Of a stretch of DNA of 64,000 nucleotides, positions 172 through 46,282 are shown one piece after another (positions within the stretch are counted from its first letter, which is position 1; each line of letters opens with the position of its first letter). The DNA is from Geosiphon pyriformis uo1. Lineage: Eukaryota; Fungi; Glomeromycota. The position numbers and the translations under genes were made by a program. The stretch is taken from assembly GCA_016748015.1 (NCBI GenBank), contig JAAOMT010000031.1:248001-312000 (forward strand), given 5' to 3'. Below the pieces are notes generated by a model. That model saw only the letters and a program-made list of their open reading frames with translations, was not told the DNA's origin and made no database searches.

Positions 172-3100
172 TTAATAACTATAATAATAAAAATAATCTT
201 AATTTGTTTTTAAAATTTGGTAAATTGTTGTTACAATAATTAAATTAATTTAAAAAATAAGTCACTAGTCCAAAAATTATTATGTACAATAACTAAAAAA
301 AAAGACAAAAAAACAATTTGCACTTATAATTTGTTTTTAAAAACTGTAAGCTATGAAATAAGTACTTTTTTTTTGGCAAAAAATAAGCCAGTTAAAGACA
401 ATTAGCATTTAAAATAGACTTTTTATAAATCTTTCTTAAAGCAAGAATAACAGTTTTAGTAATATTATATTTAAAAACAAAATGTTCAAAACATCTATAT
501 TTTTTACAATAAATTAAACTCAACCTAATTTAAAAAAGATTTACACTACTAAAAATTGATTTTATGTAAAAAACTGAATCCAAATTTTTTTTTAACATAA
601 AACTAATTACAACACATTAAATTTTATTGCCAATAATAAAAAAATAATTAATTATACAGGTTTTTTTACTAGTTTTTTTTACTAAAGCACTAAGATTATG
701 AACAGATATTTTTACAAACAAAATAAACAAAAATGCCTTAAATTAGTCCCTAAACATTTAGATATTATGATTATCTACAGTTTTAGTTACATATATCGAA
801 TTTTTAATAACTAAAAAAAACTATTTTGCTATTAGATTATTTGTTTAGCCTAATTTAGCAAATTTTATTATAGCTTTTTGTTATAGCCTAATTAGTTGTA
901 ATTAAATTGATGTTATTTGTTTATACTTAGCTATTACAATAATTATTATATTTTTAGGCATATATATAAAGATTTTATTAATAATCATAGTCTAATCTAA
1001 ACAAAATTTTTGTTTTTTAAGATTATTGTTTACAATAATACTATTTTTTTTAGCCAATGCTATAGATTTTTTCATGTTCTTTTTTAAAATAAATATAAAT
1101 TTAATAATTTTTTTAAATTTTAAAAAAATAGTGGTTTTTCCAAAACTATTAACTTTAGAGAAATTTTTTTTAATAGTCTGAGTTTTTATAATCTTAAAAT
1201 TAATTTATTTTTTGTTTAAAAATATATTGAAAAAAGATAGAAGAAATTTATTATTATTTTTCATATCAAAATAAAAAAAACTACAAAAAGAATCATAATT
1301 TAAACCAGTATTTACTTTTTTGGTTTTAAAAATAATAGCTGTCAAATTCAGAATTAGACTTGATTAAAAAATGTTTAATATTATCAAAAGAAAACTTTTT
1401 TTTTTGAAAAAAAAATCATTAAAGAAACTGTAAAAATCTTTTTTAGATGTTTTTTTTTTAAATATGTTACTGTTTAAAACTGCTTCTAAATTTACAATGA
1501 AAGAGTTATTTGCTTATAAAATATTGAAAAAAAAACAATAAAAAAAACAATAAACTTTTTTTAAAAAAATATGTTTTTTGAAAAATTTTAAACATAAAAA
1601 AAAAAGAAGTTTTTTTTAATTAATTTATACTATTTAATAAAATAAACAATATTTATGCTGGAAAAATTTTATAAATTACTATTTATTTTATTAAAATTTA
1701 TTTATTGTTAAAAAATGTTAATAATATTATTTTAATACTTTTAAACAATATTAAAACAATGATTTTTGATAATTATTGACAAAATATTAATTTTTATTTT
1801 TTTTATTGTATTTTATTTTGTATTACTAATTAATTAAAAAAATAATAAAATTATAACATTAAAAATAAACATAAATTAATTTATTAAATTGTTTATAAGA
1901 AAAATAATAAATGTTAGAATAAACTAATTATTATATTAAAAAAATTAAACATTAAATATTATTAACTATTATTAAAAATTTTTGTCTATTATATATTAAA
2001 ATTTTTAAATTAATTAACAAATTTAAAATATTAGTTTACAAATTTATACATTATAAAACTATTTGTAAAAATATAAATAAAAATAGTTAAAAAAAACAAT
2101 AATAATTAAATAATAAAATTTAATATTAACAAATTAATATTTAAAATGTTTAAAAACAATTACAAACTAGAATCAAAACTTAAAAAAACAAAAAAATATA
2201 TTTAAAACCAAATAATTTAAATTTTAATATTTAAAATAGTATTAATAATTAGAAGTTTTTTATTTAATATTTTTTTAATTATAATTTCCAGATTTTTATA
2301 AAAATAAAAATCACATATTTTAACTGATTAATAGAATTAAAATAATAAAAGATAAAACAAATATAACTATAAACTTGAAAAACCAATTTATAAATTTTAA
2401 AAATTATGTAATTAAAAAAAATTATCTAATTTAATCTTAAAAATATTATAAAAAACAAATTTTTTTTTGATTAACTATAAAAAAATCTAAAAACTATTTT
2501 TTTTTATCAATACAAATTAATAAATAAAAACAGTATTAAAAACAAAAAAATTTTTAAAATAAATAATAACATATTATTATAAATTAATAGACTTTAATTT
2601 ACTAAATATACTTAAAATTTTTAATATTATTAAAAATAGTACCAAAAAAATATTATAAAAAATAACAAAAAAAGCTAAAAAATTAGCAAATATTACAAAA
2701 AACTTTATAATCTTTAAAGTTAATAAAAAAAATTAATAAATTTAATTTATAAAATAATATTTAAAAAACTTAAAATATAAACTTTATATAAAAAAATCTA
2801 ATATTGTCTTTAATAATTAATTTAAATTCAAAAAAATCATGCAAAAATTAGAATATAATCTTAATATTTTATTAAATATTAAAATAAAAATTAATAATTT
2901 AAAAAATTTTAACAATTAGTAAATATTTTTTAAATATTATTTAATATAATATTATTAAAAAACAAAAAAAATTCAGTTTTTAATTAGTTTAATTTTTAAA
3001 ATTAAATAATTTAATAAGTTAATTGGCTAAAAATACATGCAAAAATATAATGTGTTTTGTTTTTAAAATTAGTAAAAATTAGTTAAAAACCAATATATTA

Positions 3101-3926
3101 GATAATATAAATTAATTTAAATCAAGATTAACTAATGTGTTTTTATTATTTTTATTTAAAATAAAAGATTTTTTTATTTATAATTACAATAAAACTAAAT
3201 ATTATCATTGGTATAAATAATATAAACTGGTAAAAAAATAAAAAAAAAACAGAAAAAACCAAAGTTTTATTTTTTATAAGAAAAAAAATTAAGTTTAAAA
3301 CAAAAAATTAATATTAAAAACACCAAAAAAAAGTTTAACACTTTAATAATATTTTTATCTATTATATTAAAGAATTAAAAAAGATCATTTTTTGGTTGTT
3401 TTAACTTTTTATTTAAGTAACAATAAAAAAAAACGAAAAAAATAACTTAATTACTAATTTTTTATTAAATATTTTAGAGCTTTTAGAAAAAAAGTGGTTT
3501 AAAATTAACGAAAAATTAATTAACTATTATTTTATTTAAAAAATATGATTTTATAGAATATTATTAAATAATTTTTATATTTATAAATATTTTATTAATA
3601 AAAATACTAATTGCTTTAGAAAATAAAAGAATTACAAATTTTTTACTTTTTGTTCTAATTATAATTATAAAAATATAAAAAAAAGCTTTATTGTAATTAT
3701 AAAAATAAGTTTTTATTTATTAATAATAAAAAAATGATTTATTATAAATAACAAAAATATAGAATTTTTTATTTAGCAATAATATTAACTTAATTATATT
3801 TTTTTTAAATTATTATAATACAAATTTTTTAATATTTTTTCTATTTTAACTAAAAGTTTTAAGCTAATTATATACAATAATAATATTAATAATTTTATTA
3901 TTATTGTTTTAACTATAAAATTGTTA
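172..3926. other. AT desert (~90% AT), probable hypermutated repeat relic
   Basis: Only 22 G/C in 1801-2100. No credible ORF. Sharp boundary with the LINE at ~3927. Confidence 0.65.
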
Positions 3927-6900
3927 ACGCAATAGTGGAATGCAGTGTTCTGGATGTTGGTGAATTCTTTGATACTAATCACTAATCTATTTTTGTATCA
4001 GTCAGTTTGGGTGGTTTGCTGAACACACATCTTTGTTCACTTCATAAACAAGCCAACAAGGACCATTGGAAGTATAACTTCAAAAATACTAATACTGCTT
4101 TATGGTTAAAATTCAGGGAGGTGATGGTGATAAACGCTGCTATATTTTCTGATGACTTTATGACTGCCAATGAGCTTTCGGATTTGGATTCTATGTGGGA
4201 TGTTATTCATAAGACAATGTGCTTTTTGGCAAATGAAGTTTTCAAAAAAAAATGGTTTAAGGAATATGATAGAGTTTTCACCAAGAGTTTATCCAAGTTT
4301 CACAAGCTGGAACTTCTGGTATTTAAATTAGTTAGGGCCTTCTGCTCAGTTAATAATGACAATTTTGTCTTATTGCTCAATACTTGGGAGGTACTCGATT
4401 CCGACAATGCAGTTGTGATTAGGTCTCTCTTTCTTTCTGATTCATTCTTTAATATCATTTATTCAGTTTTATCCAAAGTCAGGAAATCTTATCGTGCTTC
4501 AAAGTTGTTAGAATCTAAACGAGCCGAAGAATCTCAAATCAGATCTGCTATTGAGAAGAGGATGGAAAGCTTTGTGTGTAACAAGTGTCACACTATCCGA
4601 AGTGTTTTGAAAAGGCCTTTTCACAAGGTGGTCTTGGATCATTTGGTCATAGGTGATGAGCTAATTTTGGAACCAGACCCTGTTAAATCTAAAGTGGATA
4701 AAATTATGGAAGGTTGGACTCGAAAATGCAGTATGGTTCTTGATATTTCAGAAGACTGGTTTCGTCAATATCAGTCTTTAGACCATGTTTTTGATGGTGC
4801 TTTTTCTGATGTCATGGCCTGTGTGAGTTTTAATGAGCTGTTTGGTGTGGTTTCTAACCTGCCTGATGGCAAAGCTGCTGGTTTGTTAGGCATCTCCAAT
4901 GAACTTTGGAAACATTGTGACATTTCGGTTCTTGGTATGTTCTTGGTGCTTATTAACTTTTGTCTTTCTGGTGAATCTGTGCCTGGAGTCTAAAAGAAGG
5001 CTTGGGTTTCGATGATTCCCAAACCTTATAATTGGGAGAGCACACTCACAAACACTTGTCCTATTGCTTTAATTGAAACAACTTAGAAAATTCTGTCCAA
5101 AATTCTCTCTGATAGGATTTCTTTGGCTTGTAGCAAGTTTGATGTTTTTTATGGGGACAATTTTTCAGTGCTCAAGGGCACTACGACTCAGTTTCCCATT
5201 TTTGCAATTGGTTCGGTGGTTAAGGATACTTTTGAGAAAAACTGAGAGCTCTGGCTGGTTTTTTAAGACATGCGAAAGACATATAACTCAGTTGGTTGAG
5301 ATCATCTTAGGAAGAGTTTAATTAGAATCAAAATATATAGCAAGTTTATTCGGTTTTTTGGGGGTATTCATGGCGGTCATACCAACTGGGTAATGACCAA
5401 TTTTGGGTTGACAGATGGTTATTGTGTGCATAATGACTTGGACCAGGGAGAGGTGTTTTCATTTCTTCTTTGGCATATATTTTATTATCTTCTTTTGTGC
5501 AAAGTCAAGAGACAAGAAAGTGTGTGTGGTTACAGGCTGAATTCTTATTATGTTGTTAAGACAGGCCATGTGGAGTCTCAAGCTGGGTCAACATCTTTTT
5601 TTGCTGCTGGTGTTTTCATGGATGATACAATCTGGGTTGGTAGCAGTCAGGTTGCGACACAACACATTCTCAATATTGCCAGTGAGTTCTTTTGGATCAA
5701 TAACATTTCTATCAACAATGATAAAACAGTGGCCATTTCCATTAACTGCAGAGTTGTGAATTCTTCTTTATTAATTAGTGGTGCTCCTATTTTGATAACC
5801 AAAAAAGGAAAATCTTATCATTACTTAGGCATTTTTCTCTCGACTGAGGACTTGTTACAACCCAGTTTGGCCAAAGCTCATTTAGATGTCCGGTTTTTTG
5901 CCAATCTTGTGCTGAAGAAAGCTATCTCTAACAAACAGTTTTCATATCTGGTTTCAGCAGTTTTTTATCCTATTATCAGTTATAGAATTCAGTTTAGCTT
6001 TGTCCCTCTTAATGTTTGTAGTAAATGGGATGCCTTGATTTGCAAGAGTCTCAAATTCAAAGCTGGACTGCCCTGGGATTTCCCTAATGATGCACTCCAT
6101 CACCCATCCCTTTATGGTTTAAAAACTTTTGAACAAATTCAAGCTAAATGCAAGTCAGCATCTGTGATGTGTTTTGCCAATTCTGGTGAAATTTTGGGAT
6201 GTCTGTTTCTTCATAGGTCTCATGAATTACAGGTTTTAAGCTAGCATCCTATTCATCTTTTGGTGTTCTCGGCTCATCTGAAAATTAGCCTCACAAACAA
6301 TTTTTTGGTAGATGTTGTTCATATATTTAGAGATTGTGGTTTATCTTTAAGCAGTGCGGGACCCAGTGCATTCTAGTTTTGTGATGGTACTCCCATGTCT
6401 TTGGTGCTTGATGAGTTGAATTTTTCCAGGTGTTTTCCTTCACTTTGACAGTATGGTGTTGCCTTTGTGGAACAATTATGTGGCCGTGAGGGTGGTGTTT
6501 TTGAATGGGTAACCTTTAAGCGTTGGAAAAGGCTGGATCCACGTGGCCCCATTTCTGATTGGTTCGTCTTGTCTATTAAATTTCTGGGTAATATGGTAGT
6601 TTCTTCTATGCGAAATCTATTGATGGGGGGTGCTGATGTCTTTAATGTTTTGAATTTCATTGAGTTTGGTTTGTAATTGCTTATCTGGTCTGGGTGCTGG
6701 CTGCATCTTAGTGTATACAGACAGTTCTTTGTCTGGCTTGGAGTCTGTTAACATGAGGTCTGGTGTGGTGGTTTTCTTTGATAACATTAACATGGATATG
6801 GGAGTCAAGATTTCTGGTTTGATGTCATCTACACTAGCAGAATTGCAGATGATAGCACTTGCCCTCGAGTGTGTTCCAGTGTTTAGTAGTGTTAGTTTGT

Positions 6901-8004
6901 TCTTGGACAGTCAAGTGGTGTTGGATGCTTGCAGATCTGAATTAAGTGTGTCTCATCCAGATTTCTATAATCGCTGCTGGATAAAATGCTGTTATATTGC
7001 AAATTTTGTATGCTCGAAAAGACTGAAAATCACCTGGCATAAAGTTAAAAGCCATTCTGGTAATTTTGGCAATAACCATGCTGATGAGCTGGCTGGCCAT
7101 GCTGTTTTCTCTAATTTGATTCTTCCCTCTCCCCCCCCTCTGGTTGAATGAAAGATACATCTTGGCTGGTGGTGATATTGTTTCAGGTAATTCTAGACAT
7201 TTTGTTCACAATATTTTTTGTTCTATTCATTGTCTGCACTGGGAATATGGTTTAGGTACCACTGTTGTCACTCAAGATTTGTTGGTGGACATTGATTAAC
7301 GGAGATCTGCCTTTGTCTGGCATCCTGATTCGCATATGGCTGCTGGTTCTACTAGTAAACATACTGCTGGTATTTACACATATTTCATAAAAGCTTTACA
7401 TCGCAGGCTGCCTGTCGCTGTTCACAAACGCCTTTATAATAGAAGTTACCCAAGTGTGATCTGCTTATTTTGTGGCTGTGTGGAGGTTTCTGACCATGTC
7501 TTTTTCTGTGAAGCTGATGCTGCTATTCGTATTCGTCTTCTGGAGGATTATGCAACAATTTAGAAGAATATTTCTAGCCTTTGTCATTCCACTTTTAGTG
7601 TGTCACAATTTTTGTCCTCTTGTGTTTTGAATACTTTGTTCCATATTGCCTTGTGCAAAGAATTTGTTTTTAAGGAGTGGTTTCATGAAGCAGTCTCCGT
7701 GTTTGGTGATTTTAAGAATGCTGGTGTGAAGGTTGTGAACTTTGTGCGTGCTCTGTGTCTTGCTTTTAGGGATGAGATTTGGTCGGTCCATGCTAAGCAT
7801 CATGCCTTTATTGAAAAGCGTAATTTGATCCCTTATGACAGTTCTATGCCTGATTTTAAATCTGGCCTATCTTTTATTTACTCTGCTGGGGTTATCAAAT
7901 TGTTGGGTATTGATGTAGCCTTAGGTGTTAGTTTCGGTTTTTGTAGGTTTAGTTTGTTTATTTCTGATGCTTTTGATGTGGTTTCTATTAGTATAAGTGC
8001 TTAA
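3927..8004 (+). pseudogene. LINE ORF2 (APE tail-RT-RNase H-zf-RVT), disrupted by stops and frameshifts
   Basis: RT motifs MIPKP, PIALIET, DMRKTY, QGEVFS, FMDDTIW. RNase H motifs VYTDSS, LAELQ, FLDSQ, WHKVKSHSG..GNNHADELA. C-terminal CLFCGCVEVSDHVFFC. Confidence 0.92.
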
Positions 8005-8145
8005 TGTTGTCTTGATTGGCCTGAGTGGCTGGTCACATGTGGAAAATGCATGATTCGCACCTAATTTAGATCAATTATTTGATGTATTTCATTAGGTAGC
8101 ATTTGGATTTCACTCAATAAACGTAATAAAAAAAAAAAAAAAAAA
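3927..8145 (+). mobile_element. 5'-truncated non-LTR retrotransposon (LINE) with RT, RNase H and zinc-binding domain
   Basis: Starts near the last APE motif (FFDTNH ~ SDH). ORF2 remnants run to 8004, then 3' UTR and poly-A at 8128-8145. Confidence 0.93.
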
Positions 8146-9119
8146 TTTAAAAATTATTAATAATACAATTAATTTTAATTTCAATATTAAAAAATATTGT
8201 TATGTATAAATATTTAAAAATTTTTAATATTTAATGCACAGAATTATTTATTAACTTGATATTTTACACCTTAATTTTTTAAAAAAAGTGGATTTTTGGA
8301 TAACAACCATATTAAATAGTTTTTGTTTTCAAATATTGTCTTGTTTATAATTGTATTAATTTGGCATATTATAGCTTACAGTTTAATAATGATGTAACTA
8401 TTGTACTAGCCTTAATTTTTTCTGATACAATTAATCAAAGATATTGTGTAATATAAAGTCAGATATTAGAAATTTAAGTTTTGATTTCTGCTCTAAAGTT
8501 TTTAGTAAAAAACAATAATCATTTTCATTAGAGAAATTATAAACAATTTCGTTATTATTAGTAGAAATGAATTTGTTATCATGTAAATTACTTTTTACAT
8601 AATTATTTTGGTTTGTAACCTAAAGAAAAAAATAATAAATTTATTTAACCATAAGATGTGGATAAATTGATGGTTGGAATAAAATACGTTTCAATTTTTG
8701 CAGGACCTTCGCACTCAATTTTATTGCTCGATTTTTATTATTTAACAGTTCTGATATAGACTGCTTTGCAATTAAAGGTTTTAAAATCAGTTGGTTATAT
8801 AGCTGCTTGAAGCATAATTAAAAACCAATTATGCAATTCTTGGTCAAATATTTTGTTATTCCAATATTTATCTAACTCCACTTTTAAAATTATTAAATTA
8901 GATTTTAAATACTCGAAAATATTGCTTACCATTCTCGTGGCATAGATGTATTGTATTACAATTTAAAATGATTTGAAATCATATGACTCAATCCACTACC
9001 CTTGCTTTGGATTAGAGAATGAGCGGTAATGTTTAAATTGGGAAATTATAGTTAGTGATTTTCGCACAAACTTGATAATTTTATATAAATAGTAAAAGAA
9101 GCAACATAGACTTACCAAA

Positions 9120-11813
<2,694 letters not shown>

Positions 11814-12584
11814 TATTTCCGATTATTGTCACACAAACTTGAGATATACGCAACAAAATCAGAAAAAATCAACATAAAAGGCCACGAAAATTTGAGGTTT
11901 TCAGATTTTAGCAACTTTTTATTCAATAATGGGTTCATAATATTTTCAATCATCGTTTTCCCTTTTCAACTGTTTGGCACTAGTAATATTGTTGAAATTA
12001 ATATAGAATTATTATTATTATTATTATTATTTATTAAAAATAAAATATTTTATATATTTAATAAATGCCAAGTATTTTGTAAGAAAACTAATTTTTAATT
12101 TTTAAGACAATTAAAAAGCTTTTATTTCTTAGTTTGTAAATTTCATGTTCACAACTAAAAACTATTTTTTATAATACAGTCAGACCTCAATAAAAGAACC
12201 CTCGATAAAAGAACAACCTCTTACAAGAACATTTTTTTATAGAACCAATTGATTAATTAACAATTTTCCCTTTATATAAGAACAATCTATAAAGGAACAA
12301 GAACATAATTTTATCAAACATTTATTCGAAATTTACCTTCATATAAGAACAAATATCACGTGCTAGATGTTAATTGGTAATTGGGAAAAGAGTTAGAACG
12401 TATTGAATTGATTTCATCCTAACTTTCTTTTAAATCGATTTACATTGGACTTACTCTTTTTGATCTTGTCTGTTTTCACGTACAGCTACTTAGTTCCTAT
12501 TATATTCCAATTTAGGCTTGCTAAAACCAAATCTAATATTATCATTATAGGCATATTTTCTAACAGACTTGCTAAATTATCACA

Positions 12585-14260
12585 ATGTCAGAACCTTTAT
12601 TCAAAAAACAAAAACGAGCAGCAGTTAATGATGCTCTTCGTAAAGAAATTTGTCAATATTCCAAAAATCACTATGGCACGAAACATGATGATATTGTAGC
12701 TTACTTCAATCATAAATATCCAGAACTTCATATTTCTCGTCCAACTGTCTCCAAGATNNNNNNNNNNNNNNNNNNNNNNNNNNNNNNNNNNNNNNNNNNN
12801 NNNNNNNNNNNNNNNNNNNNNNNNNNNNNNNNNNNNNNNNNNNNNNNNNNNNNNNNNNNNNNNNNNNNNNNNNNNNNNNNNNNNNNNNNNNNNNNNNNNN
12901 NNNNNNNNNNNNNNNNNNNNNNNNNNNNNNNNNNNNNNNNNNNNNNNNNNNAAAAACGAAACCAGTTACGTGTTTACCGATTTCATGGTGAAGCAGGAAG
13001 TGTATCAACTGAAAGTTTACCAGAAGAACGAAGAAAATTAAAAACCATTATATCCGAATTTGATCCTGCTGACATATATAATGCTGATGAAACAGGATTA
13101 TTTTTTCGTATGGGACCAAATCAAACACTTGCAAAATGTCGAAATGCAGGAAAAAAATTGGTATATTATATTTACTAATTGTTATTGTTATATATTATTG
13201 TTATATTAAATTAATTGGGTTTTTTACAGGATAAATCTCAGATTACAATTCTTCTTGCTACAAATTCAACTAGATCTCACAAATTGCAGCATTTAGTAAT
13301 TGGACATGCAAAAAATCCAAGATGCTTTAAAGGAATTAATACTTCCAACCTACCTGTAATTTACAAATTCAATTCCAAAGCATGGATGCACTCAGATATA
13401 TGGAAAGCATGGCTCAAATATATAAATGAAGACTTTCGAATTCAAAATCGGCATATATTACTTTTGGCTGATAATGCAACTTCTCATCATACTCAAATCG
13501 GGGAAGATTCATTCCAATTAACCAATATTACTTTGCACTATTTTCCTCCAAATACAACATCACATCTTCAACCAATGGATGCTGGCATTATCAAATCTTT
13601 CAAAGGCAAATATAAGCATTTATATTGTCAACATATTTTACATCAATTTGAACAAAAAATTAATATTGAACAGTTAAGTAATATAATATATACAGTATTA
13701 TTATCGTTATATATTATATAATTTTATCTAATATTAATTTATTTTTTAGAAATAAATTAAACATAAAACAAGCAATTGATTATGTTGTTCAATCATGGTT
13801 TCAAGTAACACCTGTTACAATTCAAAACTGTTGGCAAAAAACGGATATTCTTTTCTATAATCAAGAATTAGAAATTCAAGAACCCGAAACATCAATTGCT
13901 ATGGATATATTCAACAATTTACCATCAAATGCACAACAATTGGTCAAAAATCTCGAAGATTATACTGTAGCAGTTGATGAATTATTGGCAACTGAAAATA
14001 TTCTTGATGATAATGAAATTGTAGATATGGTTTTAGCCGATGCTCAAATTGAAACCAATACAATTAATGACTCGGAAGAAGAATTAGAAGAATCTCCACC
14101 TGCTATTATTACAATTACAGAAGCATATGAAGCATTAAAAAAGGTAATTAGATTTGAAGAGCAATTAGCAGAAGAAAATTTTAGTATAGAAAACCAAAAT
14201 TTACTTAGAAAAAAATTATATGAATACGAAAAAATGAAGAAAATTCTAAAAAACTGGTAA
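12585..14260 (+). CDS. Tigger/CENP-B-like DDE transposase, 3 exons (introns 13161-13229 and 13673-13749)
   Basis: N-terminal HTH (ISRPTVSK), HGEAGSV, IYNADETGLF, LLADNATSH, PPNTTSHLQPMDAGII, W..VTPVTIQNCW. Splicing restores the frame. Part is hidden by the N gap. Confidence 0.85.
12758..12951. other. Assembly gap (N run)
   Basis: Run of n characters. Confidence 1.
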
Positions 14261-14421
14261 CAATTAATCAATATTTTAATAATAATAATAATAATAATTA
14301 ATTGATTTAATAAATAAATATAGTTTATTTGATAATAATTATAAAACTCTATAATAAAACACCTCTAAAATAGAACATAATTTGCATGTTTCAACTGTGT
14401 TTTTTTATAGGTTTGACTGTA

Positions 14422-16070
14422 TATTTAAGAAAACAATTAAACAAAATGTTATTTTAAAATATATATTTTTTATTTAAGCAATATTTTAAAAATATTTTAA
14501 TATTATTACAACTATTATTAAAAGTTTTGATCTTTTTAAAAACAAAATTACTATTTTTTGGTTGTTAATATTATTATTTTTTAAATAACCAAAAAATAAA
14601 TAATCAAATTTAATAATAAGTATTTTTTCTTTTGGCATTTTTTAAAACATTAATTTTGTGTTTTTTAATTTTATTATGCTTTTTTAAAACCAGTTTTTAT
14701 TTAATATGAATTTTTTTATTAATTTTAATAATAGCAACAAATTTTGATTTAGTTATAAATAACTGTATTTTTTAATTTAAACAATAAATATAATTTTTTT
14801 TTTTAATTTGTATTGTTAGAATTAATCCGAAAAGTATTTACTTATTCTTATAATTTATTGAATAAAAAAATGATTAAAAAGCACAATAATATTTGTTATT
14901 AATTCTAAAAATTACTAAATAAAACATAGAATAATAATAACAATATTATTTTATTAATAATTATAAATTAATTTTTTATTTTCAAATTTTCCAAAAAAGA
15001 TTAAACAATTGTGATTTTGAAACTAATTACATATATCAAATTTTTACAAATTTAATTTGTTTTTTTGATTAAATTTTTTTTTAATTATTATTATTATTCT
15101 TAATAGTTTTTTTTTTGCTATTTGTTAACTCATTATTCAAATTTGTAACATTATTATAAAGTTTCAAATAACTTTAAATTTTTTATTATTAAATGCTTTA
15201 CAAGTAAAGCCCAACTGAACTTTAAAACTATGCTTTAATTTTATATCATTTTATTAATTATAAAAAACAAATATTAAACTTTTTTAAAACTAATTTAATT
15301 AATTTTTTGTATAATTATAATATTTTTTAAATTAATAATATAATTGTTTAAATACATTTTTTATTTTTTATTTTTATTTTTAATTATTGTTAGAAATATA
15401 TTATTGTTATTTATAAGTTTAAAAATGTTTTTAATACTGTTATTATTAAAACTAATATTTTAAAAAGTTGTGTTTAATAGAAAATTTTTTAAGTATTAGT
15501 ATTATAATAAGTATTAATATTTAAATTATTTGGCTTTTAATTACAAAACTGTTTTTTTTTGATTTATTAAAGCTTTTTTTAAAGTTTTTGTTATATTTAA
15601 GATTTTTGTAAATTATTTTACCAGTTTAATGTTTATATTAAAGTTATTGCTTTATTAATAAAGTTTAATATTACAATTTATAATAACAAATTACTTTTAA
15701 ATTAAATTTTTTAAAAGCTTAATTGTTAAGTTGATTTAATTAGTGGAATTTGTAATTAAGTTTATTAATATCATAATAACATGATCTTTTTTTAATTAAT
15801 AAAAAGTTTATTTTTATAGTAAAAATTGAACAATATTGTTTTTATTTAGAAATTCAGATCAAGAACTTTGGCTAAAATTTTGGTTTTTGCAAAAAAGTTT
15901 TATTAATTTCAGAAATAAATTCGAAATTTTTTTTTAAGTAATAATTTTTTGGTTTATATAAAAGCTTTAAACCAAAAAATTAGCAAATTTATTAAGAGTA
16001 ATTTAAATTTATATTATATAATTAAAATATATATTAAGAATTTATTTATAATGTTTAACATAATATAAGT
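14422..16070. other. AT desert, probable hypermutated repeat relic
   Basis: Extreme AT content; residual G/C mostly in AC/GT dinucleotides. Confidence 0.6.
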
Positions 16071-16302
16071 CTAGATACCTGTTTACATATAGAAAGCATA
16101 ACTTATTCAGCAAAGTTATAATTAAAATCAAAGTAATTAAAGGATACAGATTAGCAAAGGCAGCTAGCAAATAGCGCTGTTAATTATGTAACCAGAGGAT
16201 TATATAATTACAACTGTCATAAATAAGTATTAGGAACTACACCAAAAGCATAAATAAAACTAAGCACGCAAAAATAAAGATGTGATACTTATTTACAATT
16301 TA

Positions 16303-16621
16303 TAGTAATACCTCCCCTAAGTGCACGCTCTATAAATGCATACTCTCTATATGCATGTCCCAAGTTAGGGACTTAGAGCTAAATGATTCCGAGTTCCAAA
16401 TAATAACCAATTAGAAGTTGCCAATTGTTTATTAGATAATGATAATTTGGCATTAGATTGGTTTAATTGGTTTAATGGCTAGTCACGTGTATAAAGTGCA
16501 CAGATTACATTAACTGTGAAACAATATCTATTTTATTATTGGCTATTCTTTAAATGCATACTCTCTCTAAGTGCATGAATATAGTCGGTCCCAAGAGCAT
16601 GCACTTATAGAGGTACCACTG
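16303..16621. mobile_element. pogo-like MITE (~320 bp)
   Basis: Left end TA|TAGTAATACCTCCCCTAAGTGCACGCTCT matches the reverse complement of the right end, CAGTGGTACCTCTATAAGTGCATGCTCT. TA flanks on both sides; internal TAAGTGCA/TAAATGCA repeats; no ORF. Confidence 0.8.
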
Positions 16622-16846
16622 TACTTGACAAATTCATGGAATATAGAAACACCGAATATCATAAGGTTGTAAGAATAAATTTCCCTTGTTAGTTGTTGGG
16701 ATTGCGATCGCACTCGCCTTCGATTTTTTTTATTAAGTAAGAATCCTGCAGATTAAGAGGATCTAGACTCGTTCACCTACCATTTTCCACGTTTTCAGGA
16801 TAGGAAAAAGCATTAAATATCCTTTAATTTACATTATAATCAATTC

Positions 16847-16849
16847 TTA

Positions 16850-16903
<54 letters not shown>

Positions 16904-18370
16904 TAGTTCATCTAAATTTTCATCCGCAAATAAATCTTCTTTAATCTCAATTTCTTCCTGTAATATGCCATTGTTTTTATTACTACTCCCCTCTTCGTAA
17001 GGGTTTTCTTCATGATTCGAGGTGAGCGTTGAATCATATCCCCCTTGATGGCTGTCGTCAGCCTTCCAATTATGATTCTGATTATAAGTAGAAATGTCGA
17101 ATGCATCTTCATCGTCATCATATTCGTCATCTTGGTTGACGAGATCTGGATTAAAGGTGAATAGATCACGCCCGGACATTCCAAAACCTTTTCCAGCTTT
17201 GAATGCAGCCTCCTTAGCCTTCCGCTTATCCTCCGCTTCAGCTTCAATTTTTGCCTTGCGGTTTTTCTTCCATTCCGTAAAAGATTCGAGTGTTACGGGT
17301 GTTAGGTTCTGACCTAATTTATGACGCTATAATAGAATTATCAAAGGTCAGAGCCTAAACAATTTCAATGGTAATAAAAATAGGATAATATCAAAACCTC
17401 TGTTTCTAGAAATTCTTCCAAAGTGATTTGCTCTTCTTCATCCGCTTCTGCCCTTTTTTGTGCTTTGGTTTTCAAGATGAACCCGAGAGGAAGTGCGTGT
17501 CTATACTTGCAATTCTTACCTAATAATTAAAAAACTTATAAATCATAGTTTCCTATTCGGGTATATTTAGTCCCTAAGAAATAGCAAAATAGAATGAAGT
17601 ACCTCCATTTGGACATTCCCAGAACCAACCATACTTTTGGTTTTCAATGGCTTCCAAAAAATATTTACATACAATATCAGTAGTTGTCTTTGGATTTCCA
17701 TGTTTAGACGAAACAACTTGTTCTAATTTTGACTGATCCCATTTATCCATAGTGTCTATTAAGAATGTTAAATATATCAAACGTCTCCATTGAGATATAG
17801 GACTTTGATCAAAGATAAATATTTGGCAACATGCCTTCATTGTATTCTTCTTCTCCCGCTCTCATATCGGAATAAAGATCAATCTTGGTGGTTTTTCTTT
17901 CAATGTTTAAATCATGAGAGAATTTACACTTGTCCCCTTTTTGGCATTGTCCAACTTTAAAAAAGGAACATAAAATAGTTTTTGGGTCAACACCGAAAGG
18001 AATTTTTTGCTGAACTTGAACAGGTTTGAATAATTCTGCGAGTTCCTCTTTCTTTTTTTGTTCAGCAGCTTTCTTATCAACAAGTGCTTGTTTGGCGGCG
18101 TCCTGCTCTTTCTATATAGTTTTATTATGAATATAAATTGTAAAATACAAAATGACAAACAAAATCAATATCAAGGTCAGATTAAATATGAACACGAACC
18201 TTCGTTTTCCGATCACCTGCTGCTAGAACTTGTGTTTCAATCTGTTTAATTTGCTGTTGTACCTTAGCGGACTTTTTTTTATTTTTCAGCCCAAAAGTTT
18301 TATCCTCAATAACTTTTTGCTTCTCTTTATCCTTTGATTTTGTAGATTGTTGATTCTTTTTCGGGGGCAT
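16847..18370 (-). CDS. TMA46: CCCH zinc-finger DRG family regulatory protein (Tma46/ZC3H15), multi-exon
   Basis: MPPKK...[84 protein letters not shown], acidic tail. Confidence 0.93.
16851..16903. repeat. (TCA/GAT)n microsatellite encoding poly-Asp
   Basis: About 17 perfect trinucleotide units in the last exon of TMA46. Confidence 0.95.
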
Positions 18371-18971
18371 TTCCAAGAAACAGATTCAAGATTTAAATAA
18401 TATGAGAAATTTCTTTGACAAAATGTAATACATGTATTTTGAAGAATTCGCCATTTTACGTGTAACCTCTTGGTTCATTACAAGCCACAAAGATAGATCA
18501 GAAATTTGTCAACGTATAATCTGTATTTCTTGAATCTCTTTCACCATGTCTATGAAACGCAAAAGACAAAAGAAAGTAGCTCAAAATGTTCCTTTAATAG
18601 GTTTTTAAGATTTCTGTTTGTTGACCTTACACTTTCAGCTGATTTCAAGAGTTTAGACTCAAAACAAATATATATTGAAAGGGGATCGCTCCCTTTTTCC
18701 AGTTATTCTATGAAACAGAAAATCGAACTATTCTCCTGTTTTTTAACTTAAGATTTTTTTTCGTCTAAGAATCTGTGACCAATGAAAGCTTTCTAAGTAG
18801 TAAAGAGAGCGAGAAAAAACGTGTGCGTATTTGCTCTAATGCAATTTTCATAAATAATAATCCCAAGATTCCCGATTCAAGGTTACGTGCAAGCATCTTT
18901 TGATCCCATAATTAATGAAAAGATAAACTAAACTTTGTTCCCGTTAAATTCCATTTAGTCAAGATGAATCA

Positions 18972-21882
18972 ATGCCTTCTGATAGTTTACTACTATCTAC
19001 ACCATTTATATCAAATCTTGACATTAGTTCAGATCAATCTCATTCCATACTTTCAGAATTGCAAATTCACACATTTTCAAAGAGAAATAAAGAAGTTGCG
19101 AATTCGCCTGAAGGAATGAGTGAGGAGGAAGGTATGGATTCTGAAAAAATTATCAACGAATACAAGGAAGCAGTTGGTCATCCTATAGAAAGTTCATTCG
19201 AAGATCAAGATGATAAGATGAAAACACCCACTGATTTGGAACAAGATCCTTCACCAATTGTCTCTACAAAAAGGTATTTTGCTTGAGTTTTATCGCAAGA
19301 AAACCAAATTTGTAAATGATTTGATTTTGAATTTATGCTAGCGCTGGTATCGATCCGGGTGCTGTTTCAAATTTCTCACCGACTGGCTCCAATGTTTTTG
19401 GCTCACGGGAAAACAGTACCAATAGCGACATATGTTTAATCGCCATGCAAAAAGACGAGGTAATTGTAATATGATTCTCAGATGATGAACCAAACGTTAA
19501 ACCTTTTAATTTTAATTTTTAGACAATTTGTTTTAAAGGCTATGTTCTTATATCACCGATTTATGGAAATGTCAAAATTATGGGTAACATCCTACACGGG
19601 AAATGCTCCGCAACCAATGACGACAAGACGCAAAATCTGATGGTCGATATAAAAGATGAATTTTTTTTTCAGCCAGTTTTCTCCCCACAGACCCATGCCC
19701 TTGCTGTGATTGAATGTATGACGATGGAAGCAACATCTCGGAAGACCTCTCGATCTGGCATTAAAGCTTCAGAAGAGACTATGAAGAAAATTCAGAAGCT
19801 CTTGAAAAATTTAAATTGCAATAGCCCCTCATATGATTCTATTTTAGCACTTCAAAGAATGGATTGGTGTGGGATCGCTGATCTGGAAAAAATATCAACT
19901 TCAATTTTCAGAGGAATATTTTCTGTAGATTCAATAGAGAAAGTAAACTCAAAAGTTGAAACCCAAATAGGAGAGCCCAATCAGATAAGGATCGAGGATA
20001 TTTATGGAATCCCTGGATTTCATCCCGTATGGAGATATATGTTTGAAATTGCTGTTTAATAGTCTTTGAGAGACATTATTAACCGCATTATTTAGATATT
20101 TGAACCAAAGCCTGGAATAACTTCATTGAAATATCCGGATTCATGGTTAATTGCCGCCAATCAAATTAGCACTGATTCTCTTATGAATGGTATTTTCAAC
20201 ACTGTAAATTGCCCATACATTTGTATTAAAATCTTAAATGTGATAAAATAGCCTATTTTTATTGATTTTCAGATAGTCAACCAAATATCATCGTATGCGG
20301 ACATAAAAAAGTGGGAAAATCTACCTTCTCTAGATTTTTAATGAACCATTTGCTAAATAGGTATGTCTGATATATTTTTTTTTTTACAAGAATCAAGTAT
20401 ATGAATAAAAGCGTATTTATTTCTTCCTAACCAGTTACTCAAAGATAGCTTATATCGAAAGTGATATCGGCCAATCGGAATTCACCCCATCAGGATTGGT
20501 TTCGTTGAATCTAATTGATTCCCCCCTCTTTGGTATCATAATCCTAAAAGTTTAAAATTTTTTTTATATGAGTCATCATTATCTAATCTTAGATTCATTT
20601 GGACAGGGCCACCGTTTACTCATCTAAAAAGACCATATCGTTCATATTTTATTGGTCACACCACACCCAAAGATGATCCTGATTATTATTTAGAATGTCT
20701 TGAGGAATTAGTTAATATATCTCAGCGCGATATTGCAGCCGATTTTAATGAACTAGATCTTTTAAATCCTTTAGAAATACCCTCACGTATACCCGTGATT
20801 ATCAACACACACGGATGGGTTAAAGGTACTTGGATTAATCAACGTTCTTGCTATAATCAATTTTTACTTGGTCTCAAATTCTGTTATTCCAGTAATTAAT
20901 CAATTCTTTCAACAACATCTAAGGAATGGGATATGACTTGCTCTTGCATATAATCAAACTTTTCAATCCCACTCATATCTGTCAATTCCAATCCAACTCC
21001 CATCCATACCTTAACCTTCCTCTCTTTCCTTCCTCAATTCTTTCTTCAGCCGACGAGAAATCGTGCAAAATTCTCTATGTTGATTCCGTACACCATAGCC
21101 CTAACCCTTCTAGGTTTATAGCATCGTTTCATAGAACACTTACCCTTCTTTCTTATTTTTATTCTACCCCTTCACTAAGCTCAAATTGTTCTGATAAATG
21201 GTGGGATTGTGACAAATCGTTAGTACAACACCTTCCGAGGTGCTTGGATTGGACTAAAGGATTGACTAAGGGGGTGTTTATGCTTTTTGGTGAGGTTTCA
21301 TGGAGTCAACTTTTATATGCCCTTAATGGCTCAATAGTAGGATTAATAGGAGATTTAGTGGATGAAGATCAGCTAGAGGAAGAAGAAGAGCAAAATCATG
21401 AATGGAAAGATGATAAATCAGGGCCTGGATTCGTAAGTAATCGGCTTCTTAATTTGAATTTTAATATGAATTCTTAACGTCATTGTGGGTAATATTCTTG
21501 ATTCGTCTCAACCTGATGCCAAATACAAAAGGAAGCTCCTCTATACTTTCCATCCCCTCGATTCCCACCACCACCTCCTGCACACCATACATGTCATGGT
21601 TTGGCTCTAATAAGATCGATCGATGCTGCCAGCCATACCTTTCATATCCTTACCCCCCTTCCGCATAAAATCCTCAAGAAAACAAACGCAATTGTAAAAG
21701 GCGCCTTAGAATTGCCTGTTTGTGCTAGTTTGGATCATACCATGAACACTTCTTTGGGTATATGCAGGTTACCTTGGAAGAAAGTACCCTACTTGACAGT
21801 GGATGTTAGTGGAGGAGCAGGCCATGCCGTTCCGCACGTCCGTAGAAATCTTATGAGGCGTGGGCAAATGACCAACGGGTGA
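18972..21882 (+). CDS. GRC3: Polynucleotide 5'-hydroxyl kinase Grc3/NOL9, multi-exon (start may lie upstream, e.g. MSMKRKRQK at 18547)
   Basis: P-loop CGHKKVGKSTF (~20295), ESDIGQSEFTPSG, GPPFTH, INTHGWVKGMG, ALNGSIVGL, ALIRSID...FHILTP, VPYL. Confidence 0.88.
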
Positions 21883-22019
21883 AGTGTCGGTGCTTGAAGT
21901 TAATTGAAGGCGGAATTGAGTTTTTAGAATTAAGATTAGGCTAGGAATGCTAACAACTACATTAGATGGAAAAAAGTCATGGGACATTTTAAATTTTTGT
22001 CACAAAAATGATAAAAATA

Positions 22020-25000
22020 GCTTTAAAATAATAAGGAATACACTAAAATTATAATTATTAATCAAAATAAAAGTATAATTAACCATATTTTTTGAAATCA
22101 ATGCATAAATCTTTATTAATTATAATGGATTTTCAAATATACAAAATTAAATAAAAAGAATTAACTGATTTTAAGCATATAAAAAAATTTGTATGTGAAA
22201 TATTAACACAACTCAATTATATTAATTATTTAAAATATTGTTATAATTGAAACTCATAGTTTTTATTAATTATTATATGTATTAGCTATTTTATTTTTAA
22301 ATAAATTATTAACCTAATTATTAAGTTAATTAATAACTTAGTTATTAATCTAATTTATTGATTTTTTTAGCAATTATATAAGCAATAAATTCTTTAACTA
22401 TAAAAAAAACATTAAACAAACAAGATTAAATTTAATAAAAAAATTATTTATTTATTTACTTATTTATTTATTTTAAAACTAATTATACTTATTAAATTTA
22501 TACTAATTTAATTTTTGTTTTTTCTATTTTTAATAATTGTTTTATTTGTTATTTATTAATTTATTATTTAAACTTGTAATAAAATAATGTTTTTTATAAG
22601 ATTGTTAAAACTTATCTTATTTACTATTTTATATATAATTATTTATACTTATTATAATAATTAATAGTTTAAAATATATTAATTTAAGTATATTGTAATT
22701 GTAAAAAGCATTTTTTAGCTAATTGTTTTTTTGTTAAAACTATTTGCAGTATTTTAATAATCTAAATTAGTCAATTATAAAAACATAATAAATAATTAAA
22801 AAAAAATCAAATTATTATAAATTATGTAAATTAATAAAAAACAAGTAACAAATTAAGTTTAAAAACCGAAAAAATAAAATAAAAAAATTAAATCACAATT
22901 AATGTTAATTTATTTAAAAAATTAGAATAAAATCTAACTGTTTTTTTATTTATATTTAAAAAATAATAAATTAATTACTAATTAAATTAGTAAACTGGTT
23001 TATAAATGTTTTAAAATAGTTTAAAATTTCTATAATTAATTGTTTTTTATTAAAATTAATAGTTAATCAAAAGTTAAAATTTTAAAAATTGTATAAAAAT
23101 TTTAGTATATATTATTTTTAACCAATTAATAACATTTTTTTTTTAAATTTGCATAAATTATTAATATTTAAAAAACACCTAAAATTAATAAATATTTTGA
23201 TTAAACTAGATTTATTAACAATAGTAATATTTATTATTATGTATTGTTAAACTAATAGTAATTAATAATTATTAGTAAAATTTAATTAATAATAGATTTA
23301 AATAATAAATAATTTATTATATAAAATAAATATAAATACAAATTAATTTATAATTTATAAACAGTTTTATAAAAAAACAGCTTTTAATTACTTAGTTTTT
23401 TTTGTTTTTTTATTAAATAAATTGTGTAATTAAGTTTTAAAATTCAATAAACTTTTTAGTTTTATATTTTAAGATATATAATTATATTTATTTTAAAGTT
23501 TTCAATATTAATTATTTAAATATTTACTTATTATACCATATTAATTTGATTTTAAATTTTTATTATCTGTTTTTTTATATTTTTATATTAGTTTTTAGTT
23601 TAAATAATTTATTTTTTATTATTTAAAAAATTCAATTATTAATTTAACTAATTCAGAATTTTAAAAACTTTTAAAATAACTATTTTTTTTATAATTATAT
23701 AAATAAAAATATTAAAATCATTGTTTAATTTAATTTTTTTTAATTTTTTAAGTTTTAATATATTTATTAATAGTAAAATTAATAAATTTTTAAACTTTAT
23801 TAAATTAAGCAAAATAAAAAAAGTATTACTAATTTGTTAATTATAATTAAAAATTTAGCAAAATAAATAAACAATTTAACACATTTAAAAAATACAATAT
23901 AAAATATTAAAAAATAAACAATTTATAAAACAAAAAAATATTAATATGTAATATAAATAAATAAATTAAATTAAATCATAAACAAATTTGATAATATTAA
24001 AGTTTTATTTTTGGTGTAGATTTTGATTATTTTGATTTAAATATTGTAATAATTATTAATAACAATATAATTAAATCTATATATAAAGTTTTTAAAATAT
24101 GTAATTAATTTTTGTTAATTTGTTTTTTGTTTAAAAATAATTTTTTTGTAATCATTTTAAGTTTTTATATTAATGTTTTATTGTATTTAAAAATATTATA
24201 GTTGATAATAATTTAATTATTAAAACAATAAATAAATGTTTTTTTATAATATTAAATAATAATTTTAATAAAAATAACATTAAATACAGTAATATAAATT
24301 TGTATAATATAATAACAAAAATTTTAACTGTTAAAATATTTATTTAAGACAATTTTAAAAAAGTTAAAAAGATTATTAATTATATTTTTATTAATAAAAT
24401 ATTAATTTATTAAAATTTTTTTAATACTAATTATAAAATTGTTTTGATATTATTTAGTTTAAAATTAATTTACTTATTATTATGTAAAAACAAACTAATT
24501 AGAATTATTATAAATACAAATTAAATTTAACTAATTTTGTAATTCAGTATAAATTTATTAAATTTAAATTTTGTATAAGATTTTATTAAAAAAAATATTA
24601 ATTTAATTTGCTAATAAAATAATTATTAAAACCAAATTTAAAAAATTTAATATAATTGTCAACAAAATTTTTTCAAGTTTTATAAGTTAAAAAATATTGG
24701 TTTTTAAAATTTTAAAAATAATTTGTTTAAGTAATAATTTTGAATTTAAGAATTTAATAAATGCTTAAAAAGATTAAATATAAATAAAATAATGATTTTT
24801 CAGATTTTTTGAATAAAAAATAGTTAAGTTTTAATATAAAAAACTTATTAAAATTCAAAATATTTAACAAAAAATTAAAAAATTAAAAATATAATTAATA
24901 AATACATAAAGTTTTTTGTTTTAAATAAAAATCAAATTATTAAGAATATTTTTAAGAAATTTTTCCAAAAAATTATTATTAAATTAAAAAAAACATAGTT

Positions 25001-25762
25001 TTGAATTTTATTATAATTAACTAAACACAAAAAAGACAAATTTACAAAAATAAAATTTTAATTTAAAATAGTTAATATGTTTTTTTAATTATGTTAAAAA
25101 AGATAATTTTAGTAAAAATATAAATACAGTGTTTTTTAATAAATTTTTTAAGATTTATTAAATAAAAAATAGTTAAATTACGAAATTATAGTAATTAGTT
25201 TATTTTAAAATTATTTTTAAAATTATTAAATATTTATTTATTAAGTAAAAAAGTTTTTAATTTTTAGAAAAAAACTTAAATTTTTATAATTTTTAAGCTT
25301 TATAAATAAAAAAGCATTTTAATTAATATTTATTCTATAATTATAATTAAAAATACTATTAAAAATGTTCTTTAATAAAATTTTTTGTGGCTTGTAAAAT
25401 TAATAATATATAAAAATAATTTTTTTGTTTTAAAAAAAATATTTACTTAAATATTTATTTTTATTATTAATTTAAAAATAATTTAAATAAAAATAAAAAA
25501 TATAGTTAATCTTATAAGATATGTAAAATATATATAATTTAATAAATTAAAAATATTTAAAAAAAAGTTTTAAGAAATTAAAATATTTATTAAGTTTTTT
25601 AAGCATATTTACAATAACAAAATTAATTAAATTATAACATATTTTAATTTAATAACTAGTTATAAAATTATTGATAATGTTATTAAATAAAAAAATTAAT
25701 TAATTACAAAAAAACATAATTAATATATAATAAATATACAATAATATAAAATAATAATAAAT
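22020..25762. other. AT desert, probable hypermutated repeat relic
   Basis: 3.7 kb of extreme AT content with no ORF of 60 aa or more. Confidence 0.65.
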
Positions 25763-25773
25763 AAGACACAATA

Positions 25774-28078: not shown

Positions 28079-28176
28079 GACACAATAATTTTTTTATATT
28101 AAGTTTAATAAGTATAGTCTAACCACTACTTAGTACTTTAAAACAAATTAAGTATTTTAAATTAAATACAATTCAT

Positions 28177-31605: not shown

Positions 31606-32659
31606 TGTTACAGGTAAACTTGATGGGTATGGGAAATGGCAATGTTTGGTGCTCTCAATTATTGATGATGCATCTTTCATGTAATTCTGTTGGCTTAGTC
31701 TTGATTATCAGTCTCTGAAGGTCTATTCCTGGATGTGAATTTTACCCATTGAGTTCTTTGGTTATAAGGCACAGAGTTTGTCTTTCGTCGATTGCAACAT
31801 TTTTTGTAAATGTGAGCTTTCTTCTCTGAGCTAACAAGCGCAGTTGTTAGGATCTGGCATTGTCTTTTCACTCTTCTGGTAAGCTAACAAGATAATGTTA
31901 ATATCCAAAACTTAGGGGGAGCTTCCCTTTTTTACCAGGCTATCACGAAGTCTATTCCCAGACAGTTGATTTTACTATGTTGCCGCTTCACAAAAAATTA
32001 AGACAGAAAAAGAAAGAAAAAAAAAAAGAAAAAAAAAGAAAAGAGAGAAAAGATAAATTAGTATCATCAATCACTGTGATCAAAAGCAATTGGTCCAAAT
32101 CGTTAATAGGTTTGAGGTGATTATGCTAAGAGCATCTGTTCTAGGATGGAGGTACGAGACAAGGGTTAATTCACATAAATTTTACAAAGTTCGAAAACAT
32201 GAATTCATGATTCTGATTTCTTTTAATAATTGGTTTATTTCAGGAGATGAAATAGGGAAGATAATAAAGAATGAAGGGATATGGATATTTTAATTTCTGG
32301 TCTAGAGATTCATATCTATTTTTTCTTCTCTGTCTTTTCTCACTTCTACAACTACTTGCTTTTATACATTCTTTTGGTTTTACAGGATTGCTTTCAATTG
32401 TTTCGCTATCGCTAGCTATTGCTTTGTTGTTTCTGTTATTGCTTTGTTTTTCTATGTTATCACTAGTTATTCTATGTTATAACACGTTATTTGATATTAT
32501 TACATGTTATTCTGTGTTATCCTGCATTATAACACGTTATCCTATATTATTGCACGCTATTCTGCGTTATCCAACATTATTGCGTGTTATTCTGTGTTAT
32601 GTCATATTTTTGGTCACATTTTTTCATAACTTTGGATCAGTTTTTCTACTCAGGTAACA
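31606..32659 (-). repeat. 3' LTR of element B
   Basis: Direct repeat of 41704-42817 with TG...CA ends. Confidence 0.95.
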
Positions 32660-32673
32660 TTATCTCTCTCTTT

Positions 32674-33050
32674 TTAAAATTGAGCTCCTGCAAAACCGTA
32701 TGTATCTGTTATCGTGGCTTTGTTTGTGTAATGTTTGATTGTTGTCTCGAGTATTGCCTTTTGTAGATCTTTGAACTGTTGATTGGTTATTCATCCTATG
32801 CTGTTAACCATTATGGTTTTCATAGATTCATTCAGTAGTATGTTTGGGCAATGTTGAAAGGTGGCGTATAGTTGGTATGCTGCTTTGTAATGTAGGGTCA
32901 GGTTGTTTTTCCTTATAAATTTTTCTACTTATTGTATTGCTTCTTTGTTGAATGTTTTCTGGCTGAGATCTTTGTATAGTGTTTTCAAGTCAAGCTGTTC
33001 TCCAATTTTGTAGAACCAATAAGCTAAAGAAAGTCTTTCTTTTCATTCCT
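32674..33050 (-). pseudogene. ORF3 (unknown function) of element B, conserved core
   Basis: YWFYKIGEQL...FIRKNN...AAYQLYATFQHCPNILLN...SIG*IT..QFKDLQ...GAQF*. Confidence 0.75.
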
Positions 33051-36679: not shown

Positions 36680-37090
36680 GGTACATTTCTTCTTCCACTT
36701 AATCCAAACCCGTTGATTCCTCAGACAGTGAGGCCTAACTCTTTTTGGGTTGTTACTGGGGTTAATTGGGGTATTTTGACTAGGGGTAGGAAGATAGCTT
36801 GGGCAATCTTTTCTTGTAATTCTATTTTGTAGAGTCTGTCCGAATTGTTCTGTAGCATTATGATAATGTTTCCCGTGTAACCAGCATCAATGATTCTTCC
36901 TTTTATGTCGATTTCTTTCTTGATTAGACTAGATCGAAAGGCAACTTGTACTATTGTACTAACAGGAATTTCTAACATTATCTTAAAATCTATTTTTATG
37001 AGGGAATGTGAGACTATAATAATGGGTGATTGTCTGGGATATCATAGGTCAAAACTGGCATTGGTGTCATGCACTTTTTCGGGGCAGATT
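36680..37090 (-). pseudogene. dUTPase domain of element B
   Basis: PEKVHDTNASFDL, RSSL, GRIIDAGYTGNI, KIAQAIF, GINGFG. Confidence 0.9.
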
Positions 37091-46272: not shown

Positions 46273-46282
46273 TAATCTCTTC

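Follow-up and report, generated by a model that had tools for sequence, protein, structure and literature searches.

One-way C>T erosion turns transposable elements into AT deserts in the fungus Geosiphon pyriformis, with a mild preference for sequence context

Analysis of a 64,000-bp stretch of the genome of Geosiphon pyriformis uo1, a Glomeromycotina fungus outside the Dikarya, demonstrates that the AT deserts within this stretch (the window) are ghosts of long interspersed nuclear elements (LINEs), and reveals strong C>T change that is restricted to repeats and for which no report was found in this lineage. Repeat-directed C>T mutagenesis has been described in ascomycetes and some basidiomycetes. 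An earlier reading, made from the letters of the window alone (the sequence-only reading), had proposed that transposable elements (TEs) are eroded by C>T changes dependent upon a 5' pyrimidine, and had attributed the process to an unusual-context methyltransferase or a cytosine deaminase. Its observation is partly confirmed and its interpretation partly supported: ghost alignments, spectra of copy pairs and controls bear out that TEs undergo a cumulative, two-strand, repeat-restricted and one-way loss of C to T, down to less than 10% GC, while the specificity claimed for the process is not borne out. The best reading of the data is a steady, methylation-linked C>T mutation of silenced repeats, to which we assign a probability of roughly 0.58.

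The origin of the deserts was examined using an alignment score tolerant of C>T changes, with reversed or complemented sequence and host genes as controls, and by searching the 792-contig, 128.3-Mb Geosiphon assembly. Ghost alignments of 1500-3940, 14480-16050 and 22000-25770 to LINE DNA of 30-40% GC scored 56-116 versus at most 20 for controls; no confident alignment was obtained with the same scoring for 8130-8700 or 60400-61300. The deserts and LINE-related elements of the window are as follows.

172-1500, minus strand: eroded LINE copy of a high-copy family, end of open reading frame (ORF) 1 and start of the endonuclease region, approximately 17% GC (32-copy alignment).
1501-3940, minus strand: AT desert, 9% GC, ghost of a LINE ORF1 (aligned part 2214-3111; score 116 versus 15 for controls).
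3946-8130, plus strand: younger, 5'-truncated LINE with reverse transcriptase (RT), RNase H and poly-A tail, 38% GC, many stops (Pfam RVT_1, RNase_H).
14480-16050, plus strand: AT desert, approximately 12% GC, ghost of a LINE ORF1 (aligned part 15283-15578; score 56 versus 16 for controls).
22000-25770, plus strand: multi-copy AT desert, 9% GC, ghost of a LINE ORF2 (endonuclease part 23971-24393, RT part 25174-25679; scores 70-95 versus at most 19 for controls).
25791-28070, plus strand: young LINE-related ORF1 element, 40% GC, the reference for spectra.
59380-60406, minus strand: half-eroded copy (22% GC) of the element at 25771-26800 (pairwise spectrum).

The LINE family is present at 40, 33, 30, 22, 17 and 9% GC. 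For the 172-1500 family, 858 candidates were found, with 40 scored copies at 70-79% identity, and a relative at 30% GC (L030) carries the LINE endonuclease start. Comparison of the ghost at 2214-3111 with the 40%-GC element (25791-28050) yields 153 C>T changes and 122 G>A changes, as opposed to 6 each of T>C and A>G, and the half-eroded copy at 59380-60406 displays 207 C>T, 25 T>C and 9 transversions at C, with a loss that is uniform (45-57%) along its length. Younger copies diverge in the same manner: the element at 25791-28070 is 93% identical to the copy at L018 (150 transitions, 6 transversions), the ORF of which matches Geosiphon pyriformis G9A89_003886 at 100% identity, and the LINE at 3946-8130, with an observed/expected (o/e) CpG of 0.28, differs from L028 by 176 transitions and 12 transversions. 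All named LINE matches were from Geosiphon, the others among the best 150 being similarly close, and no locus of the sister lineage Ambispora was found. Two separate copies (25763-28087 and L018:5315-7600) consist of an ORF1 (RRM, CCHC knuckle) followed by a LINE-like 3' tail and poly-A, without an ORF2. In addition, three LINE copies (L010, L019, L023) are already at 16% GC yet 86-89% identical, so that their duplication or conversion must have followed partial erosion.

The base composition of the deserts carries the signature that first drew attention to them. In the pooled desert set (9,955 bp, 11% GC), ApC outnumbers TpC 595 to 283, a ratio of 2.10 that is not near expectation (binomial p 3e-26; TE copies share ancestry, which renders the p-values of all context tests optimistic). 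GpC is likewise in excess (o/e 2.4), CpA survives freely as had been claimed (o/e 1.06), and only 7 CpG remain. The original hand counts, 19 ApC/GpT to 3 TpC/GpA in 1801-2100 and 23 to 4 in 23041-23400, proved exact, and both stretches are among the most extreme: across 24 desert tiles of 300 bp, ApC:TpC ranges from approximately 1:1 (15:16, 12:12) up to 26:3. The statement that surviving C is almost always preceded by A thus captured a real ApC excess but was too strong, as about one-third of surviving C follows T or C and GpC survival equals ApC survival.

Host DNA of the same window keeps normal TC and CG, as the sequence-only reading had also held, and does not share the bias. In 25 introns (four approximate, since the Tma46-like splice gave no clean frame) ApC:TpC is 0.58, GC 26.6% and CpG o/e 0.67; the ratio is 0.63 in exons and 0.65 in the intergenic DNA at 18371-18971, and introns and intergenic DNA together retain TpC and CpG (o/e 0.67-0.89). 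Spliced gene models were joined to check intron limits, and domain searches were made with single exons. The unaffected host genes used as controls are listed below.

9120-11813, plus strand: copine gene with 13 introns; clean 556-codon frame after removal of GT-AG introns, C2 domain in exon 1.
16847-18370, minus strand: Tma46/ZC3H15-like gene (Pfam DFRP_C; composition), intron limits approximate.
18972-21882, plus strand: gene that reads in translation as NOL9/Grc3-like, with 8 introns and a clean 760-codon frame.

The Tma46-like gene contains a perfect trinucleotide run of 17.7 copies (16851-16903), corresponding to the poly-Asp tail of its protein. Desert edges are sharp (100-200 bp); within approximately 200 bp of the stop codon of the gene at 18972-21882, GC drops from 55% to 15% (100-bp profile). 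Next to this gene the desert (22000-22500) opens with 400 bp at 12-15% GC, versus 7-9% deeper, possibly reflecting gene-proximal protection. Across approximately 1,000 tiles from 35 loci, picked because they hold one eroded family, ApC:TpC climbs monotonically with falling GC, from 0.9 above 25% GC to 1.35 at 15-20% and 2.29 at 5-10%.

The spectrum of change was determined from the four closest pairs of copies, two of which are the paired long terminal repeats (LTRs) of the following elements, compared pairwise only and without a consensus.

31606-42688, strand unassigned: LTR element with LTRs at 31606-32590 and 41704-42688, differing by 79 transitions and 2 transversions.
45262-55200, strand unassigned: LTR element with LTRs at 45262-46272 and 54221-55200, differing by 48 transitions and 2 transversions.

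The latter contains a dUTPase domain at 50354-51004 (Pfam E 1e-16). Transitions make up 453 of the 475 differences in the four pairs, and 328 of these 453 (approximately 70%) lie outside CpG. Transitions per C:G site are 51 times as frequent as transversions per site, the 22 transversions in 5,840 sites being mostly A<>T with C<>G almost absent. The direction is C to T: in the 32-copy alignment, T>C affects at most 0.8% of T sites while approximately 65% of C is lost, both strands lose alike (0.64 versus 0.61), and 2 CpG remain in approximately 1,400 copy-sites. Neither CpG nor CpA decay explains the spectra in full, in agreement with the sequence-only reading.

Rates in young pairs vary with context, being 0.525 for CpG, 0.208 for TpC, 0.126 for CpC, 0.108 for ApC and 0.100 for GpC. 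A 5' pyrimidine (Y) raises loss relative to a 5' purine (R) by a factor of 1.65 in young pairs (p 3e-11) and 1.84 in eroded pairs; the effect is mostly that of TpC, with CpC only slightly above RpC in young pairs, and the 32-copy alignment yields TpC 1.27-1.38, CpC 1.15-1.25, ApC 0.86-0.91 and GpC 0.75-0.80. By 3' base the rates are 0.123 (A), 0.180 (C) and 0.135 (T), and in young pairs CHG (0.145) lies below CHH (0.250). In a logistic model the +2 base, where a pyrimidine speeds loss and a purine slows it (likelihood ratio (LR) 73), matters no less than the -1 base (LR 56), an effect that the sequence-only reading had not picked up. Positions +1, -2 and -3 contribute less, T at -2 raising the rate. 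The 5'-neighbour signature is genuine, though modest, and makes up just one half of the motif: TCHY sites are lost 3-4 times as readily as RCHR sites, whether in LINEs, in LTR elements, in non-coding LTR pairs or in eroded copies. Since the bias is equal in non-coding LTR-LTR pairs, codon selection was rejected as its cause. Loss of CpG by 5' base (A 0.58, C 0.70, G 0.41, T 0.59) displays no TpCpG specificity. A 57-bp tandem array at L025:6353-7365 (15% GC) shows the same transition-dominated, 5'-pyrimidine-biased divergence, indicating that the process is not confined to transposase-coding DNA.

Simulations in which the LINE DNA of the window was eroded to 9% GC under rival context models account for the desert composition. 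The resulting ApC:TpC was 0.95 for flat C>T, 0.92 with fast CpG, 1.70 with the fitted rates and 2.44 with YC at twice RC, as compared to an observed 2.2-2.5; GpC o/e reached 2.7-2.8 under the latter two models (observed 2.3-2.4). Mutation at CpA, as in repeat-induced point mutation (RIP), drove CpA o/e to 0.37, and a 10-fold APOBEC-like bias gave an ApC:TpC of 6.3 already at 17% GC. Flat C>T, CpG-only, CpA-RIP and strict YC models were each rejected on such grounds, their ratios missing the observed deserts. Once erosion is deep, the compounding of a mild bias is enough to explain all that the sequence-only reading had observed.

Comparisons between copies also bear upon tempo. No same-strand runs of mutations were detected between copies (combined z 0.52), nor any excess of tandem CC>TT (39 same-lineage versus 41 opposite-lineage doubles), and in a test that left out the pair L016/L018, the loads of sister copies were equal within Poisson error (chi2 16.1, 14 df). 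Clock-like loads, the lack of strand clusters and the lack of CC>TT excess argue against episodic RIP, a processive deaminase and ultraviolet (UV) damage alike. A tandem-repeated coding region of the host, by comparison, differs by 50 transitions and 72 transversions, with a transition/transversion ratio of approximately 1 at third positions; one such repeat that escapes erosion, L020:1-837, consists of 162-bp tandem units at 39% GC, keeps its CpG and is transversion-rich. Together these data suggest that silenced DNA changes steadily, site by site, and not in bursts triggered by duplication alone.

In the mechanism that we favor, inserted TE copies would become silenced and cytosine-methylated, after which T would steadily replace their cytosines, at a high rate per site and on either strand, down to approximately 8-10% GC. 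CpG would be lost first, via DNMT1-type methylation, while other cytosines would be lost at a quarter to half of the CpG rate, as set by a DIM-2-like, all-context methyltransferase with a flanking preference, such that 5'-T(T)-C-N-Y is fast and R-C-N-R slow (3-4-fold). Deamination may be spontaneous or enzyme-assisted, and would presumably occur during vegetative growth. Genes, introns and promoters would escape because they are unmethylated.

Candidate enzymes are present in the genome. Ten C5-methyltransferase profile matches fall in six contigs (C371, C702, C657, C646, C666, C692): C371 combines RFD, two BAH and the catalytic domain, the domain matches of a DNMT1, while C702 has BAH and catalytic domains with no RFD match, making it a DIM-2-like candidate by domain order only, and the remaining loci, including the compact C657, are without BAH matches. 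Arbuscular mycorrhizal fungi (AMF) keep DNMT1, DNMT5, DIM-2 and RID (PMC8298701). The survey of enzymes thus located methyltransferases and gave no match for APOBEC_N (PF08210), DddA-like or OTT_1508 (PF14428, PF14441) profiles, weak negatives given that the DddA-like and OTT_1508 searches were made without a positive control and that intron-rich genes can escape profile searches. One UDG-family match is also present. Of the two agents named by the sequence-only reading, the methyltransferase remains the best candidate, while the deaminase fares poorly against the weak bias and the lack of clusters.

The closest known parallel to steady, methylation-linked erosion is found in Zymoseptoria tritici, in which Dim2 raises mitotic mutation more than 10-fold, over 95% of it C>T, in methylated repeats (PMC8016269). 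As in that system, erosion in Geosiphon is gradual, almost purely C>T, repeat-located and directed at non-CpG targets, and a DIM-2-like candidate exists, upon which the process may depend. Unlike Zymoseptoria, where more than 98% of changes are at CpA and CpG is spared (PMC8016269), Geosiphon loses C in all contexts, CpG fastest, with TpC and a +2 pyrimidine favored, and its erosion runs to approximately 8% GC. CpG as first target also recalls the TE CpG methylation of Rhizophagus and Gigaspora, members of the same subphylum (PMC8298701, bioRxiv 2021.03.30.436303, PMC13443276); CpG decay alone, however, cannot give the Geosiphon deserts in simulation.

Several points weigh against this reading. 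We infer, rather than observe, 5-methylcytosine (5mC) in these repeats, and the DIM-2-like label of C702 is drawn from domain order alone. The flanking preference of DIM-2 is still open (PMC11315935), so that the TCNY motif is not matchable to this enzyme, and Zymoseptoria Dim2 targets CpA, not TpC (PMC8016269). Tiles at 10-20% GC from Rhizophagus, which has the same enzyme classes, show an ApC:TpC of 1.0-1.06 (n=26 tiles, a small sample). Finally, the pair L016/L018 carries unequal loads (84 versus 32).

A tentative variant is a cytosine mutator that is targeted to repeats, works in vegetative growth and is driven by an enzyme having a T-C-N-Y preference of its own, such as a methyltransferase-family or TET-coupled enzyme that actively promotes deamination. 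If true, such a mutator would represent a genome defence outside the Dikarya that is either unconnected with RIP or the form from which RIP descends.

It is unlikely, by comparison, that only CpG loss is methylation decay while non-CpG loss arises where unmethylated C is damaged spontaneously or by oxidation under poor heterochromatin repair (or from TET-oxidised 5mC), the TCNY bias being a preference of chemistry or repair. Clock-like, unclustered, all-context and mildly biased changes, together with a lone UDG-family match, would suit this view; that match nevertheless means that a uracil-glycosylase-family protein exists, and the closest pairs show no rise in transversions, in particular in C>A and C>G, unlike in a general failure of repair.

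RIP in Neurospora is an episodic, heavy mutation of near-identical duplicates that leaves strand-biased clusters. A homology-triggered, RID-dependent form of it, weak in each of many cryptic sexual cycles and with a lineage-specific context, appears improbable here. As in Neurospora and other Pezizomycotina (RID/DIM-2), change is one-way C>T, on both strands and restricted to repeats, leaving AT-rich relics with sharp edges; compact, BAH-less methyltransferase loci such as C657 exist, RID is reported in AMF (PMC8298701), and many weak rounds would look Poisson too. Geosiphon differs, however, in lying outside the Dikarya, in its lack of CpA preference and in the lack of bursts or strand-coordinated runs, and its young, near-identical repeats are largely intact. 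LTR pairs 9-10 kb apart are only approximately 8% diverged, and the host tandem repeat is spared, though it is coding and under selection. A young DNA transposon of the window makes the same point.

12181-14400, plus strand: young pogo/Tc5-type DDE_1 transposon with two introns (DDE_1 E 1e-35), right end approximate.
12758-12951, strand unassigned: assembly gap (N run) inside the transposase, true length approximately 245 bp by sister-copy spacing.

Copies of this transposon number at least 40, at 81-98% identity, and the one in the window keeps its CpG (o/e 0.70; ApC:TpC 0.73), as some 40 copies at 91-98% identity appear to do; they are well suited to following how erosion begins. The sides of the gap, searched separately, lie 244-245 bp apart in at least 11 sister copies, and 173 + 245 + 2 = 420 keeps the frame, so the sides are continuous and the estimated 194 N is some 50 short. 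As the gap lies within the young transposon and no desert touches it, it was rejected as a cause of the deserts. RIP-like hypermutation at TpCpG in Pucciniomycotina (PMC3318451) similarly combines TE-restricted C>T with a 5'-T influence, while CpG loss in Geosiphon is not TpCpG-specific and most changes are non-CpG. No RIP signature was found in Gigaspora margarita or Mucoromycotina (bioRxiv 2021.03.30.436303), a TE survey of AMF makes no mention of RIP (PMC11952901), and our literature search, the scope of which excluded two Geosiphon genome papers, found no paper linking Geosiphon with RIP.

The proposal of the sequence-only reading, a dedicated TC/CC-preferring deaminase (APOBEC- or DddA-like) that is directed to repeats, is very improbable. 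As with the TC-deaminases APOBEC3, APOBEC1 and DddA, TpC is the fastest non-CpG context, at twice RpC, and T at -2 adds to the rate. Unlike the activity of these enzymes, the bias is only about 2-fold, far too weak by simulation, unclustered and shared by both strands, with CpG fastest and, within the limits of the weak negatives above, no family match. Because both element strands lose C equally, cDNA editing was rejected. AID prefers WRC (a 5' purine), the opposite of the bias seen here. A TpC/CpC-specific APOBEC/AID-like or dipyrimidine mechanism is not supported, given a 5'-pyrimidine effect of only 1.6-1.8-fold, the primacy of CpG and the equal strength of the +2 base.

Genome-wide AT-biased mutation, with selection or GC-biased gene conversion holding up genes and their flanks, is hardly credible: the low GC of introns would fit, but CpG and TpC persist in introns and in intergenic DNA, desert edges are sharp and the host tandem repeat has a transition/transversion ratio of approximately 1 at third positions. 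UV dipyrimidine damage in a surface-dwelling fungus, repaired only in transcribed DNA, would produce a 5'-pyrimidine bias and the raised rate before a 3' C, but is largely refuted by the lack of CC>TT excess, by RCA sites, which are unable to form dimers and still mutate at approximately half the TpC rate, and by the sparing of non-transcribed intergenic DNA.

Erosion in Geosiphon resembles the RIP genome defence of moulds, and its mild preference does not point to an APOBEC-like enzyme. For the genome itself, TE content and TE ages estimated from LTR divergence are badly misjudged, because approximately 95% of divergence stems from the C>T process and old copies escape ordinary search. Steady, methylation-linked erosion would also furnish a testable prediction for the orphan AMF enzymes DIM-2 and RID, namely non-CpG 5mC ranked TCNY above RCNR. 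As a near-saturating, non-CpG case in the Glomeromycotina, it may indicate that methyltransferase-linked mutagenic defence is older than the Dikarya split, or that it arose a second time.

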